DNA of 63,824 nt, counting the filler, from Reticulomyxa filosa (taxonomy: Eukaryota; Protista; Foraminifera), in assembly GCA_000512085.1 (NCBI GenBank). It is 22 parts of 22 records of this genome, joined end to end, with 100 filler letters (N's around TTAATTAATTAA, not from the genome) between each part and the next. Parts side by side here need not be neighbours in the genome. Positions count along the whole stretch, not along the records: positions 16,436 to 20,254 come from ASPP01007269.1; 21 more parts are not named here. One strand, 5' to 3'. Shown here one piece after another: positions 17,889 to 20,354 of the stretch (position 1 is the first letter of the stretch; each line of letters opens with the position of its first letter). The position numbers and the translations under genes were made by a program. The notes under the pieces are model-generated. The model saw only the letters and a list, made by a program, of their open reading frames with translations. It did no database searches and had not been told where the DNA came from.

Positions 17889-20214
17889 ATGGGTGGAAAT
17901 GTTGGAGCACTTTGCGGAATGACACATGATCCAACACTTGCAGATCCTACAAAAGAGCCACTACGAAAAGGAGGAGACGAAGACAGCAGTGACATTAACA
18001 TCGAAGAAGTTGCGCCTCTGAATGACAATTCTCCTCAAAGAGTGAGTGATCAAGAAACGCCAATAAGCAGCAACAGTTTGTAAATTTTGCTATATCAATC
18101 CTCAAAAAAAAAAAAAAAACAAAAGCAAAAAAAAAAAAAGTAGGCATTGAAGACGAGGGACCAGATCTACGAAAGATGATCGAGGATTTGACAAAGTCAT
18201 CGTATGATCAATGGATCGAAAGCACAAAAAAAGATAAGGACGCGTTAGTCAATGGAACTATCGACGACAACGAATTGCAATCAGACAAGAAATTTCGGGA
18301 CTTTATTATCGCCATTACACGAAACAAAATAACCTATTTTGAATTGGGTATTCTTTCCAAAAAAAAATATTATTATTATTTATTTTGAACACCAAAAAAA
18401 AAAAAAAATCTTATTTTTTTTTTTTTTTTGCAACACAAATCACTTTTAAAAAAAAAGAAATAGTAATGTCGAATTGGAAAGGGCACTGTAAAGATTTAAT
18501 GGAATACATGAAAAGCAAGTGGCAATGGTGCGAAGAGCAAATGAAAGACCATGAGAACGAACTGAGATATGAGTCCTTGAAAGAGCAGTACGAGTGCGAA
18601 CAAACAAAGGACGTGGATTGGAAAGGGGTGACGAAACAGGCGATCCCGCGAGCTGGAGGGGATGGCAATTGCGAAGGCGTAGTGGCTCAATTCGTGAATA
18701 AACAGCGACTGAGCGAACAAGAGCTGGCCACGTGTCGACGAGTAGTTATGCTTTGGAGATGGCTCGACACAACGCATGGCATTCACACCTTGCATGACGT
18801 ATTCGAATCCAAGCGTCAATTGTGTCTCATTACGTCGGCCTTGGAAGGAGGGGATTTGTTTCATTACATTACTTCCGATTCTATCCGCCCACTTTGGAAT
18901 GAAGTCGCTATTGCCACTTTATTTGCACAAGTTTGTTTGTTTGTTTGTTTGTTTGTTTGTTTGTTAAAAAAAAAAAAATAATAATTTTTTTTTTCGTTTT
19001 TCAAAATGGAAACAATGTTTGCACGTAAACATTTGCAAAGATAATGACAGCGGTGAACAGTATGCACGAGAAAGGCATCGTCCATTGCAATTTGCAACCG
19101 GAACATGTAATGATGGACAAATCGACATGGAGTGCCAAAGTCCAGATTACCAACTTGGAACGGGCCATGCCGTGGCCTTTGGCGAGTCGCACGTCGTTGC
19201 ACGTGCACTCGAATGCGCCGTCCTACGGGGGATACGTTGAGTGCGCCGCTCCTGAGCTCGTCTCCTGCTCCAAGAGGAAAATCGATCTCATGCAGGTTGA
19301 TATGTGGTCGTCCGGATGCATTTTGTTTTTATTGCTTTGTGGGCACTTTCCTTTTTTCGTCGACGCCAATCATTCTACTGTTTCGCTTGATATTGGTTAT
19401 ATATATATACATACATATATATGTATGTATATATAATCAAATTATTATATTCGTCTTGTACAGGCCAATGGATTGACAAAAATGAATATTGGCAAACGCA
19501 TGTGTCAGCAGAGGCTCGTGATTTGGTAAAGTCATTGCTACGTCGAAACGGTAGTGATCGATTGACCGCACAACAGGTACTGAACCATCCATGGATCACC
19601 GCGGCTGCAGCCACAACCACAACCACAGCCACGAAGCCGACAGCAATGCCAGATATCTATTGGCACGAATTGCGAAAGACGCGAATCAAACGCAAGTTGC
19701 AGCGAGGCATGCGATTGCTGCTAGCCGTGGATCAATTGGCTGGATTGTTCGATCCCGATGTCAATCCCTGTTTCGAGTGGGATCATCCCATGTCGTCCGA
19801 CGCACAACTCCAACAATACGCTTCTACTGGTCAAACCACACGTGTCTGCCTTCCTCATCTTCTCAAACCCATCTCTTTGAAACAGCTACGTATATACATA
19901 TACATATATATCTTTTTATGATAAAAGAATGCAAACAATGGGGTGATAATACGTATTATTATTATTTGTATCATCCTCGTCATTGTCATCAAATGAATTG
20001 CAAACAATGGTTTGTTTTAAACTGTTTGTCAATGCGATGCAATTAGATTGGCGAGCGAAGAAAGCGAACCAGAGGAGGACACTCCATGCGTCATCGATAA
20101 TGGAAGCGGCATGATGAAAGCAGGCTTTGCAGGAGAAGCCAATCCCCGTGCTGTGTTTCCTTCCGTTGTGGCGCGACAAAAATATTCGCAAACTTCACTT
20201 AGCTCGCCGTTAAA
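17889..20214 (+). CDS. CaMK-like pseudokinase, probably fused to a C-terminal actin-like domain (3'-partial). Exons 17889-18075, 18144-18347, 18464-18930, 19041-19395, 19464-19889, 19928-19952, 20047-~20214
   Basis: All junctions are GT-AG and frame-preserving. Kinase motifs [78 protein letters not shown]; last exon is actin-like. Confidence 0.82.
20047..20214 (+). CDS. Actin-family N-terminal exon (phosphate-1 loop)
   Basis: [30 protein letters not shown] versus canonical actin [30 protein letters not shown]; preceded by a TTAG acceptor with no ATG of its own before the motif. Confidence 0.92.
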
Positions 20215-20354
20215 GTTAGTTGGTTTGAGGGATTAGTAAAAAAAAAAAAAAAAANNNNNNNNNNNNNNNNNNNNNNNNNNNNNNNNNNNNNNNNNNNNTT
20301 AATTAATTAANNNNNNNNNNNNNNNNNNNNNNNNNNNNNNNNNNNNNNNNNNNN

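Follow-up and report, generated by a model that had tools for sequence, protein, structure and literature searches.

Actin is almost always found as a stand-alone protein, and the known fusions at its N-terminus carry filamin-like, ankyrin or ubiquitin parts; none was found with a kinase. The extension of filactin is composed of filamin-like repeats and does not contain a kinase. Dynactin Arp11 has a short D-loop and caps the pointed end of the filament. The D-loop with Met44 and Met47 is located at the pointed-end face of actin, where it makes the longitudinal filament contact (PMC9982024). Among calmodulin-responsive regulators of actin, the CaMK pseudokinase CaMKv is palmitoylated and influences actin in a manner that depends on calmodulin binding but not on kinase activity (PMC5095516; PMC9371321). 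The foraminifer Reticulomyxa, a giant freshwater amoeba, is a classic model of rapid transport along colinear microtubules and microfilaments (PMC2113829), and the building and maintenance of such networks has been described as unresolved (PMC13371060).

Here, we describe a locus of Reticulomyxa filosa (assembly GCA_000512085.1), in which a CAMK-type pseudokinase is followed by an actin-related domain, a pairing that is apparently undescribed. The locus lies on ASPP01007269.1, the entire contig being a 3819-base piece of the analysed window (the whole stretch of 63,824 nucleotides, to which coordinates refer unless another contig is named); a human or bacterial origin of this contig was rejected. 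A fusion is the most economical gene model, and we regard a true fusion as the probable case. That a single gene links the pseudokinase to a full actin fold (approximately 940 residues if complete) has, in our judgement, slightly better than even chances.

Six GT-AG introns, predicted from the DNA only, would yield a frame of 617 codons with zero stops, in which the DNGSG motif of the actin phosphate-1 loop begins at residue 572 (Table 1). The first-pass annotation had proposed a continuous in-frame join by way of a phase-1 GT at 19890, an AG at 19927, an exon at 19928-19952, a GT at 19953 and an AG at 20046; each of these sites is present, and the join is open over the 617 codons. The exons have a GC content of 0.36-0.50, compared to 0.15-0.30 in the introns, and the ATG at 17889 is preceded by approximately 1450 bases of AT-rich non-coding DNA. 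The introns at 18076-18143 and 18348-18463 feature A-rich tracts ahead of the AG instead of polypyrimidine tracts.

Table 1. Features of the predicted pseudokinase-actin gene on contig ASPP01007269.1 (window coordinates).
Feature	Position	Strand	Description
Exon 1	17889..18075	+	ATG, Gly2 myristoylation-type start, Cys9, acidic low-complexity segment
Intron 1	18076..18143	+	68 nt, GT-AG, poly-A tract, GC 0.19
Exon 2	18144..18347	+	Pre-kinase segment; coding +27 bits; no significant family match
Intron 2	18348..18463	+	116 nt, GC 0.15
Exon 3	18464..18930	+	Segment common to RFI_17755, then degenerate kinase N-lobe from ~18589
Intron 3	18931..19040	+	110 nt, GTTT microsatellite; position shared by RFI_17755
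Exon 4	19041..19395	+	Kinase C-lobe
Intron 4	19396..19463	+	68 nt, TA microsatellite; phase-1 intron matched in RFI_17755
Exon 5	19464..19889	+	Kinase end (HPW ~19586-19594), regulatory helix (~19655-19750), 46-residue linker
Predicted intron 5	19890..19927	+	38 nt, TA/CA microsatellite, GC 0.16, phase 1, first-AG acceptor
Predicted micro-exon	19928..19952	+	25 nt; preserves frame into actin
Predicted intron 6	19953..20046	+	94 nt, no internal AG
Actin-like exon	20047..20222	+	3' boundary uncertain: 20214, 20218, 20222 or 20235
Probable intron 7 start	20223..20254	+	Donor GTTTGA, runs into contig-end poly-A; if unspliced, TAG TAA at 20234-20239

Most of this gene was missed by the public annotation. 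The NCBI gene calls on the contig comprise two partial ones only, 17889-18388 (156 aa) and 18466-18981 (171 aa), and the region 19041-20236 has no NCBI annotation. Both calls are apparently wrong, as they run on across intronic poly-A/T tracts, and they leave exons 4-7 without annotation. The R. filosa assembly is very fragmented (N50 3.6 kb); its introns average 87 bp, and its genes are separated by a median of 426 bp (PMC13746701 Table 1). The 3' end of ASPP01007269.1 is a 17-nt poly-A tract, and two other fetched R. filosa contigs likewise start or end in homopolymers, one of them within a gene. Because of the poly-A end and these parallel cases, the contig likely stops at a break inside an intron. 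On ASPP01027854.1, an unannotated rhodanese/sulfurtransferase-like coding stretch was identified by eye at 1500-1800, approximately 745 nt past the stop of RFI_31705; the poly-T contig end cuts it off.

The predicted protein starts with exon 1, which has a coding score of +33 bits, no Pfam match and a match to a PROSITE-type myristoylation pattern. The N-acylation-type start proposed in the first pass therefore stands at the level of a pattern match, and Cys9 represents a possible palmitoylation site. A pre-kinase segment (18300-18525, W-K-G...L..Y..SK), probably helical and without Pfam match, is shared with RFI_17755 (ASPP01013634.1, 150-240) and resembles a small uncharacterised protist domain.

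The kinase domain was detected by Pfam (Pkinase) in exons 3, 4 and 5, at 0.0045, 2.2e-13 and 2.6e-6, respectively. The solved structures nearest to exon 4 are CIPK23, CaMK1G and AMPK, and the CAMK-group PDB matches of the kinase exons include CIPK23, CaMK1, AMPK, MNK, CDPK and CASK. The fold is hence that of a Pkinase domain with its nearest relatives in the CAMK group, and the paralogue matches are CaMK1/CaMK2/CDPK/RSK. Five of the five catalytic features of an active kinase are replaced, i.e., the Gly loop, the beta-3 Lys, the alphaC Glu, the HRD Asp and the DFG Asp. In alignments with active relatives, the N-lobe encoded by exon 3 lacks the Gly loop and the alphaC Glu and carries Gln in place of the beta-3 Lys (18688-18690). 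In exon 4, HRD is changed to HCN (19083-19091) and DFG to NLE (19152-19160), and within the catalytic loop Lys is replaced by Gln and Asn by His. APE, DxWSxG and HPW are retained, and the C-lobe scaffold is apparently intact. These alignments identify the domain as a CAMK-group pseudokinase, in agreement with the earlier assignment as CaMK-like. A decayed kinase pseudogene was considered and rejected, as 546 codons are open and introns are shared with the paralogue.

Downstream of the kinase domain, a basic amphipathic helix (8 K/R versus 2 D/E in 30 residues) can be aligned to the autoregulatory/calmodulin-binding segment found in proteins of the CaMK1/CaMK2 type. AlphaFold2 applied to exon 5 alone predicts a confident helix at residues 64-95 and gives low confidence past residue 100, where the linker lies; the 46 linker residues are predicted to be disordered. 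At the sequence level, the alignment and the structure prediction characterise this element as a regulatory helix of the calmodulin-binding type that is retained in the pseudokinase. The start of the linker (19740-19790) can be loosely aligned to a weak EF-hand of the metagenomic relative P0012, for which the predicted fold of exon 5 gives no support; this stretch may represent the degenerate relic of an EF-hand.

The nearest relatives that we found, RFI_17755 and RFI_31705, are CAMK-group kinases of R. filosa itself. RFI_17755 matches exon 3 at 4e-13 and has the positions of introns 3 and 4 in common with the pseudokinase gene, which supports this part of the gene model. Both paralogues, active kinases with HRD and DFG retained, terminate at the regulatory helix or short of it and are not followed by actin. 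The pseudokinase gene, unlike these two, runs on for 46 coding-like residues to a splice donor. The gene model of RFI_17755 (ASPP01013634.1, 250-310) seems to span a poly-A frameshift through a doubtful intron, probably owing to a homopolymer sequencing error.

The actin-like exon yields a Pfam Actin match at 20048-20233 (1.9e-10, 40.4 bits, cut-off 27) and matches solved actins in the PDB at approximately 1e-10. It harbours an acidic N-terminal stretch, the phosphate-1 loop DNGSGxxKAG, AGFAG, FPS and a short, divergent D-loop. The phosphate-1 loop and the beta1-beta3 motifs, with the invariant DNGSG kept, place the exon in the actin/ARP superfamily (PF00022; atlas features 0.96). Identity over the exon amounts to 45-54%. 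Conserved columns are kept in 19 of 20 cases, compared to 8 of 14 variable columns (p=0.012), and the DNA differences to a viral actin number 3, 4 and 16 at the first, second and third codon position, being mostly third-position changes. By these measures, the exon is under purifying selection and is not a decaying copy. The giant-virus actins of contigs L029 and L030 served as alignment references only. On these metagenome-assembled contigs, full-length actin genes (L029, 3998-5137; L030, 3173-4309) adjoin a common hypothetical gene. The GMMKAG variant of the phosphate-1 loop is common to the R. filosa exon, both giant-virus actins and many of the matched database fragments.

The 3' end of the actin-like exon is less sharply defined. 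Similarity to actin fades past exon residue 47, with divergence setting in after actin Arg37, and then the exon residues LVG align with YVG of actin. Candidate donors are located at 20215, 20219, 20223 and 20236. The donor GTTTGA at 20223 directly follows LVG and is of a type used elsewhere in the gene; it fits best, since LVG aligns with YVG, and the exon therefore probably ends at 20222. The actin exon as such, which had been proposed earlier, is upheld by the Pfam match (1.9e-10), while its end is moved from 20214. Delimited in this manner, the D-loop is approximately 2 residues shorter than in conventional actin, Ser/Thr-rich, and has Ser at the positions of Met44 and Met47; its departure from conventional actin, noted previously, is thus evident in the alignment. 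Conventional actin is characterised by a conserved D-loop with Met44 and Met47 and by very high identity, and the exon displays neither. A recent copy of conventional actin was rejected as an origin, given the divergent D-loop.

Approximately 58 of 375 actin residues are encoded on the contig, which stops at about actin residue 55, and a contig that continues it was not found. A complete actin fold would comprise four subdomains and also include the phosphate-2, adenosine and connect motifs. The fusion might be transcribed and yet comprise an N-terminal actin fragment only, i.e., some 60 residues that end at the TAG at 20234 or join unrelated exons and do not form an actin fold. The fading similarity past exon residue 47, the TAG TAA that closes the frame ahead of the poly-A, and the fact that nothing is visible downstream of the contig end would all fit such a truncated product. 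However, the nucleotide-binding loop is selectively conserved, which is sensible only in a whole fold, similarity returns at LVG = YVG just ahead of a typical donor, and contigs of this assembly break in intronic homopolymers. We consider a mere fragment improbable.

To assess the junction, we used a Markov model trained on approximately 3.2 kb of homology-supported R. filosa coding DNA and 3.4 kb of non-coding DNA. The linker scores +21 bits as coding and the actin frame +45 to +47 bits, the latter being the best frame, and intron 6 is non-coding in 3 of 3 frames. The micro-exon reaches a weak +3 bits, a value attained by 6% of held-out non-coding 25-mers. The unspliced kinase end scores -14 to -25 bits if taken as coding, in line with the initial impression that this stretch is intron-like. 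Exactly at the 19890 donor, the GC content drops from approximately 0.5 to 0.16, and the TA repeat at this site resembles that of intron 4. In introns 5 and 6 alike, the acceptor is the first AG 3' of the donor; an alternative in-frame route from 19890 to 20060, joining 19889 to 20061, skips three AGs. The fused path as a whole attains 48-50 bits versus at most 23 bits for paths that end the kinase early. Frame and coding scores hence favour a gene model with an N-terminal fusion to the actin-like part, although the join itself is a prediction made at the DNA level.

The coding scores also bear on the notion that another splice path ends the pseudokinase, which would leave the actin-like stretch as a relic without function in the last exon or 3' UTR. 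Two such paths have canonical sites throughout: direct splicing from 19890 to 20046, which causes a frameshift and a stop at approximately 20114, and use of an exon 19928-20009, which creates a TGA across the 20010/20046 junction. Moreover, the GTTTGT at 20010 is the donor hexamer of introns 1 and 3. Yet, these paths score 1 to 23 bits versus approximately 50 bits, the actin frame outscores the other frames and is under purifying selection, and the GC content of the actin stretch is 0.49, compared to the 0.2 of non-coding DNA expected from drift. Such a relic is very unlikely. In the same region, an exact 12-nt direct repeat occurs at 19930-19941 in the micro-exon and at 19999-20010 in intron 6, 69 nt apart (48 of 20000 shuffles). 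The second copy ends in the GTTTGT donor at 20010, use of which would form a TGA across the junction. The repeat and this donor may reflect an alternative terminating splice form or the relic of a local duplication.

The main counter-evidence to the fusion is an ATG at 19918-19920, which is located within intron 5, in frame with the micro-exon and overlapping the read-through stop TGA at 19919-19921. The first-pass annotation had stated that the actin exon has no ATG of its own; this holds for the exon proper, but the ATG in intron 5 permits a stand-alone start. Two touching or overlapping units are therefore conceivable, namely an actin-related protein that starts at 19918 and is driven by a promoter in the last kinase exon, and a kinase that ends separately, e.g., at the TGA 19919-19921. 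An open in-frame ATG is found in 3.4% of shuffled versions of intron 5, and the coding scores of the fusion and of stand-alone actin are equal (48.2 versus 48.4 and 50.5 versus 48.8 bits), such that the model cannot separate them. Furthermore, the kinase paralogues are stand-alone proteins, and very short first exons are known in actin genes, e.g., in yeast ACT1. On the other hand, the promoter would have to sit inside GC-rich coding sequence, the C-terminus of the kinase would derive from a TA microsatellite at -14 to -25 bits, and the canonical donor at the GC break as well as the frame-matching first AG would be left unexplained. The kinase stop would also overlap the actin ATG, a spacing of -4 bp compared to approximately 745 bp after RFI_31705 and a genome median of 426 bp (PMC13746701), which argues for the fusion. 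Two separate units are thus unlikely in our view; an additional actin-only isoform would be compatible with the fusion.

Intron 5 with its 38 nt is shorter than the seven other measured introns (68-157 nt) and than the genome-wide mean of 87 nt, and together with the weakly coding micro-exon, the in-frame ATG at 19918 and the failure to find a fused homologue it counts against the fusion. The very short intron 5 and the ATG would also be accounted for by an assembly misjoin at the TA/CA microsatellite 19891-19912, with a kinase intron on the left and, on the right, the 5' portion of an unrelated actin-related gene that includes ATG 19918. The draft is fragmented (N50 3.6 kb), the repeat lies exactly between the kinase and the actin parts, and looking for odd fusions enriches for chimeras. 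However, the repeat is imperfect and just approximately 21 nt long, which is shorter than usual assembly overlaps. Similar repeats in introns 3 and 4 have flanks that are collinear with the paralogue, and the frame match would be a 1-in-3 coincidence. A misjoin would spare the costs of the two-unit reading at the price of an assembly error, and appears quite unlikely.

Homology searches were performed exon by exon, a design that is ill-suited to a 940-residue fusion, and yielded no protein with both domains. Exon 3 retrieved its self-match only. Exon 5, run as a single-exon query against 1.84 billion representatives, retrieved generic kinases of the CAMK group, all lacking an actin motif, and is itself absent from the protein collections. 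Its top match P0002, a plectin-repeat protein, was dismissed as an artefact, in which 20 weak matches are summed. A search with RFI_17755 gave no Pkinase+Actin protein among the 120 matches listed, with candidates of a length of 221-703 only. Scans of metagenome, viral and prokaryotic contigs returned distant kinases, the two giant-virus actins, or nothing. Finally, the literature search retrieved no description of a kinase-actin fusion, in keeping with the earlier statement that no fusion of a CaMK pseudokinase to actin is known.

If the fusion is real, the chain would comprise in this order a lipid-anchored N-terminus, a dead CAMK-group kinase and an autoregulatory/calmodulin-binding helix, which a flexible linker would connect to an actin-related domain; the remainder of this domain would be encoded on a missing contig. 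Such a gene may have arisen when a kinase gene was placed immediately 5' of an actin-related gene, the last kinase donor being spliced today to an AG located ten bases within the former first exon of the actin-related gene. This history would explain the short intron 5, the micro-exon and the relic ATG together. Since the catalytic residues are all lost, the kinase domain would act as a scaffold or a switch and not as an enzyme. Acylation, predicted at the pattern level, would anchor the protein at a membrane. As in CaMKs and CaMKv, binding of Ca2+/calmodulin, predicted at the motif level, would detach the regulatory helix from the dead kinase, and would change how far the actin domain extends or how exposed it is. 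The actin domain retains the nucleotide-binding loop and would not support filament extension at its pointed-end face. With a short D-loop that lacks equivalents of Met44 and Met47 at the longitudinal contact, it would be expected to be poor at polymerising, and might terminate a filament or seed one.

Provided that the fusion exists, we tentatively propose that the protein is tethered to a membrane and caps or anchors (or seeds) actin filaments under the control of Ca2+/calmodulin, a reading that falls somewhat short of even chances; the main alternative is a platform on which actin-binding proteins dock. In this organism, a role in the reticulopodia would be plausible. In broader terms, Foraminifera may, though this is still doubtful, hold an undescribed class of membrane-anchored, Ca2+/calmodulin-gated proteins that unite a kinase and an actin fold in one chain and directly link calcium signals with the capping or anchoring of filaments within the reticulopodial network. 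If this were true, a single chain would combine a membrane anchor with a calcium switch and a filament-end module, and a concrete candidate regulator of reticulopodial networks would be at hand.

Among known systems, the vertebrate pseudokinase CaMKv (VACAMKL) resembles the predicted R. filosa protein in its dead CaMK-like domain, its calmodulin-binding segment and its N-terminal acylation, with calmodulin binding and acylation being motif predictions for R. filosa. CaMKv differs in acting via the Rho-GEF Lfc and in lacking an actin domain, and orthology is not implied. The R. filosa protein in turn has a myristoylation-type N-terminus and has also lost the beta-3 Lys. RFI_17755 shares two intron positions and the pre-kinase segment with the pseudokinase gene, and RFI_31705 shares the regulatory helix; in contrast to the pseudokinase, both possess HRD and DFG and lack an actin domain.

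With regard to the actin part, filactin of Dictyostelium and Physarum, as proposed for the R. filosa protein, places an actin domain behind a long N-terminal extension (PMC2441452; PMC4758236), yet its actin domain is near conventional actin, whereas the R. filosa exon has a divergent D-loop. Chlorarachniophyte ubiquitin-actin, which is also rhizarian (PMC6332867), and primate POTE-actin are lineage-specific N-terminal actin fusions, but their partners are ubiquitin, which is probably cleaved off, and ankyrin repeats, respectively, and their actin is near-conventional. Apicomplexan Alp1 is similar in that it combines an actin fold with a reduced D-loop (10.64898/2026.07.14.737759). Alp1 and Arp11 are, however, stand-alone proteins, and the comparison with R. 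filosa rests on 58 residues. The actin-fragmin kinase of Physarum, likewise a giant amoeboid cell, connects a kinase with the regulation of actin; in contrast to the proposed R. filosa protein, this kinase is active, phosphorylates actin and is not fused to it.
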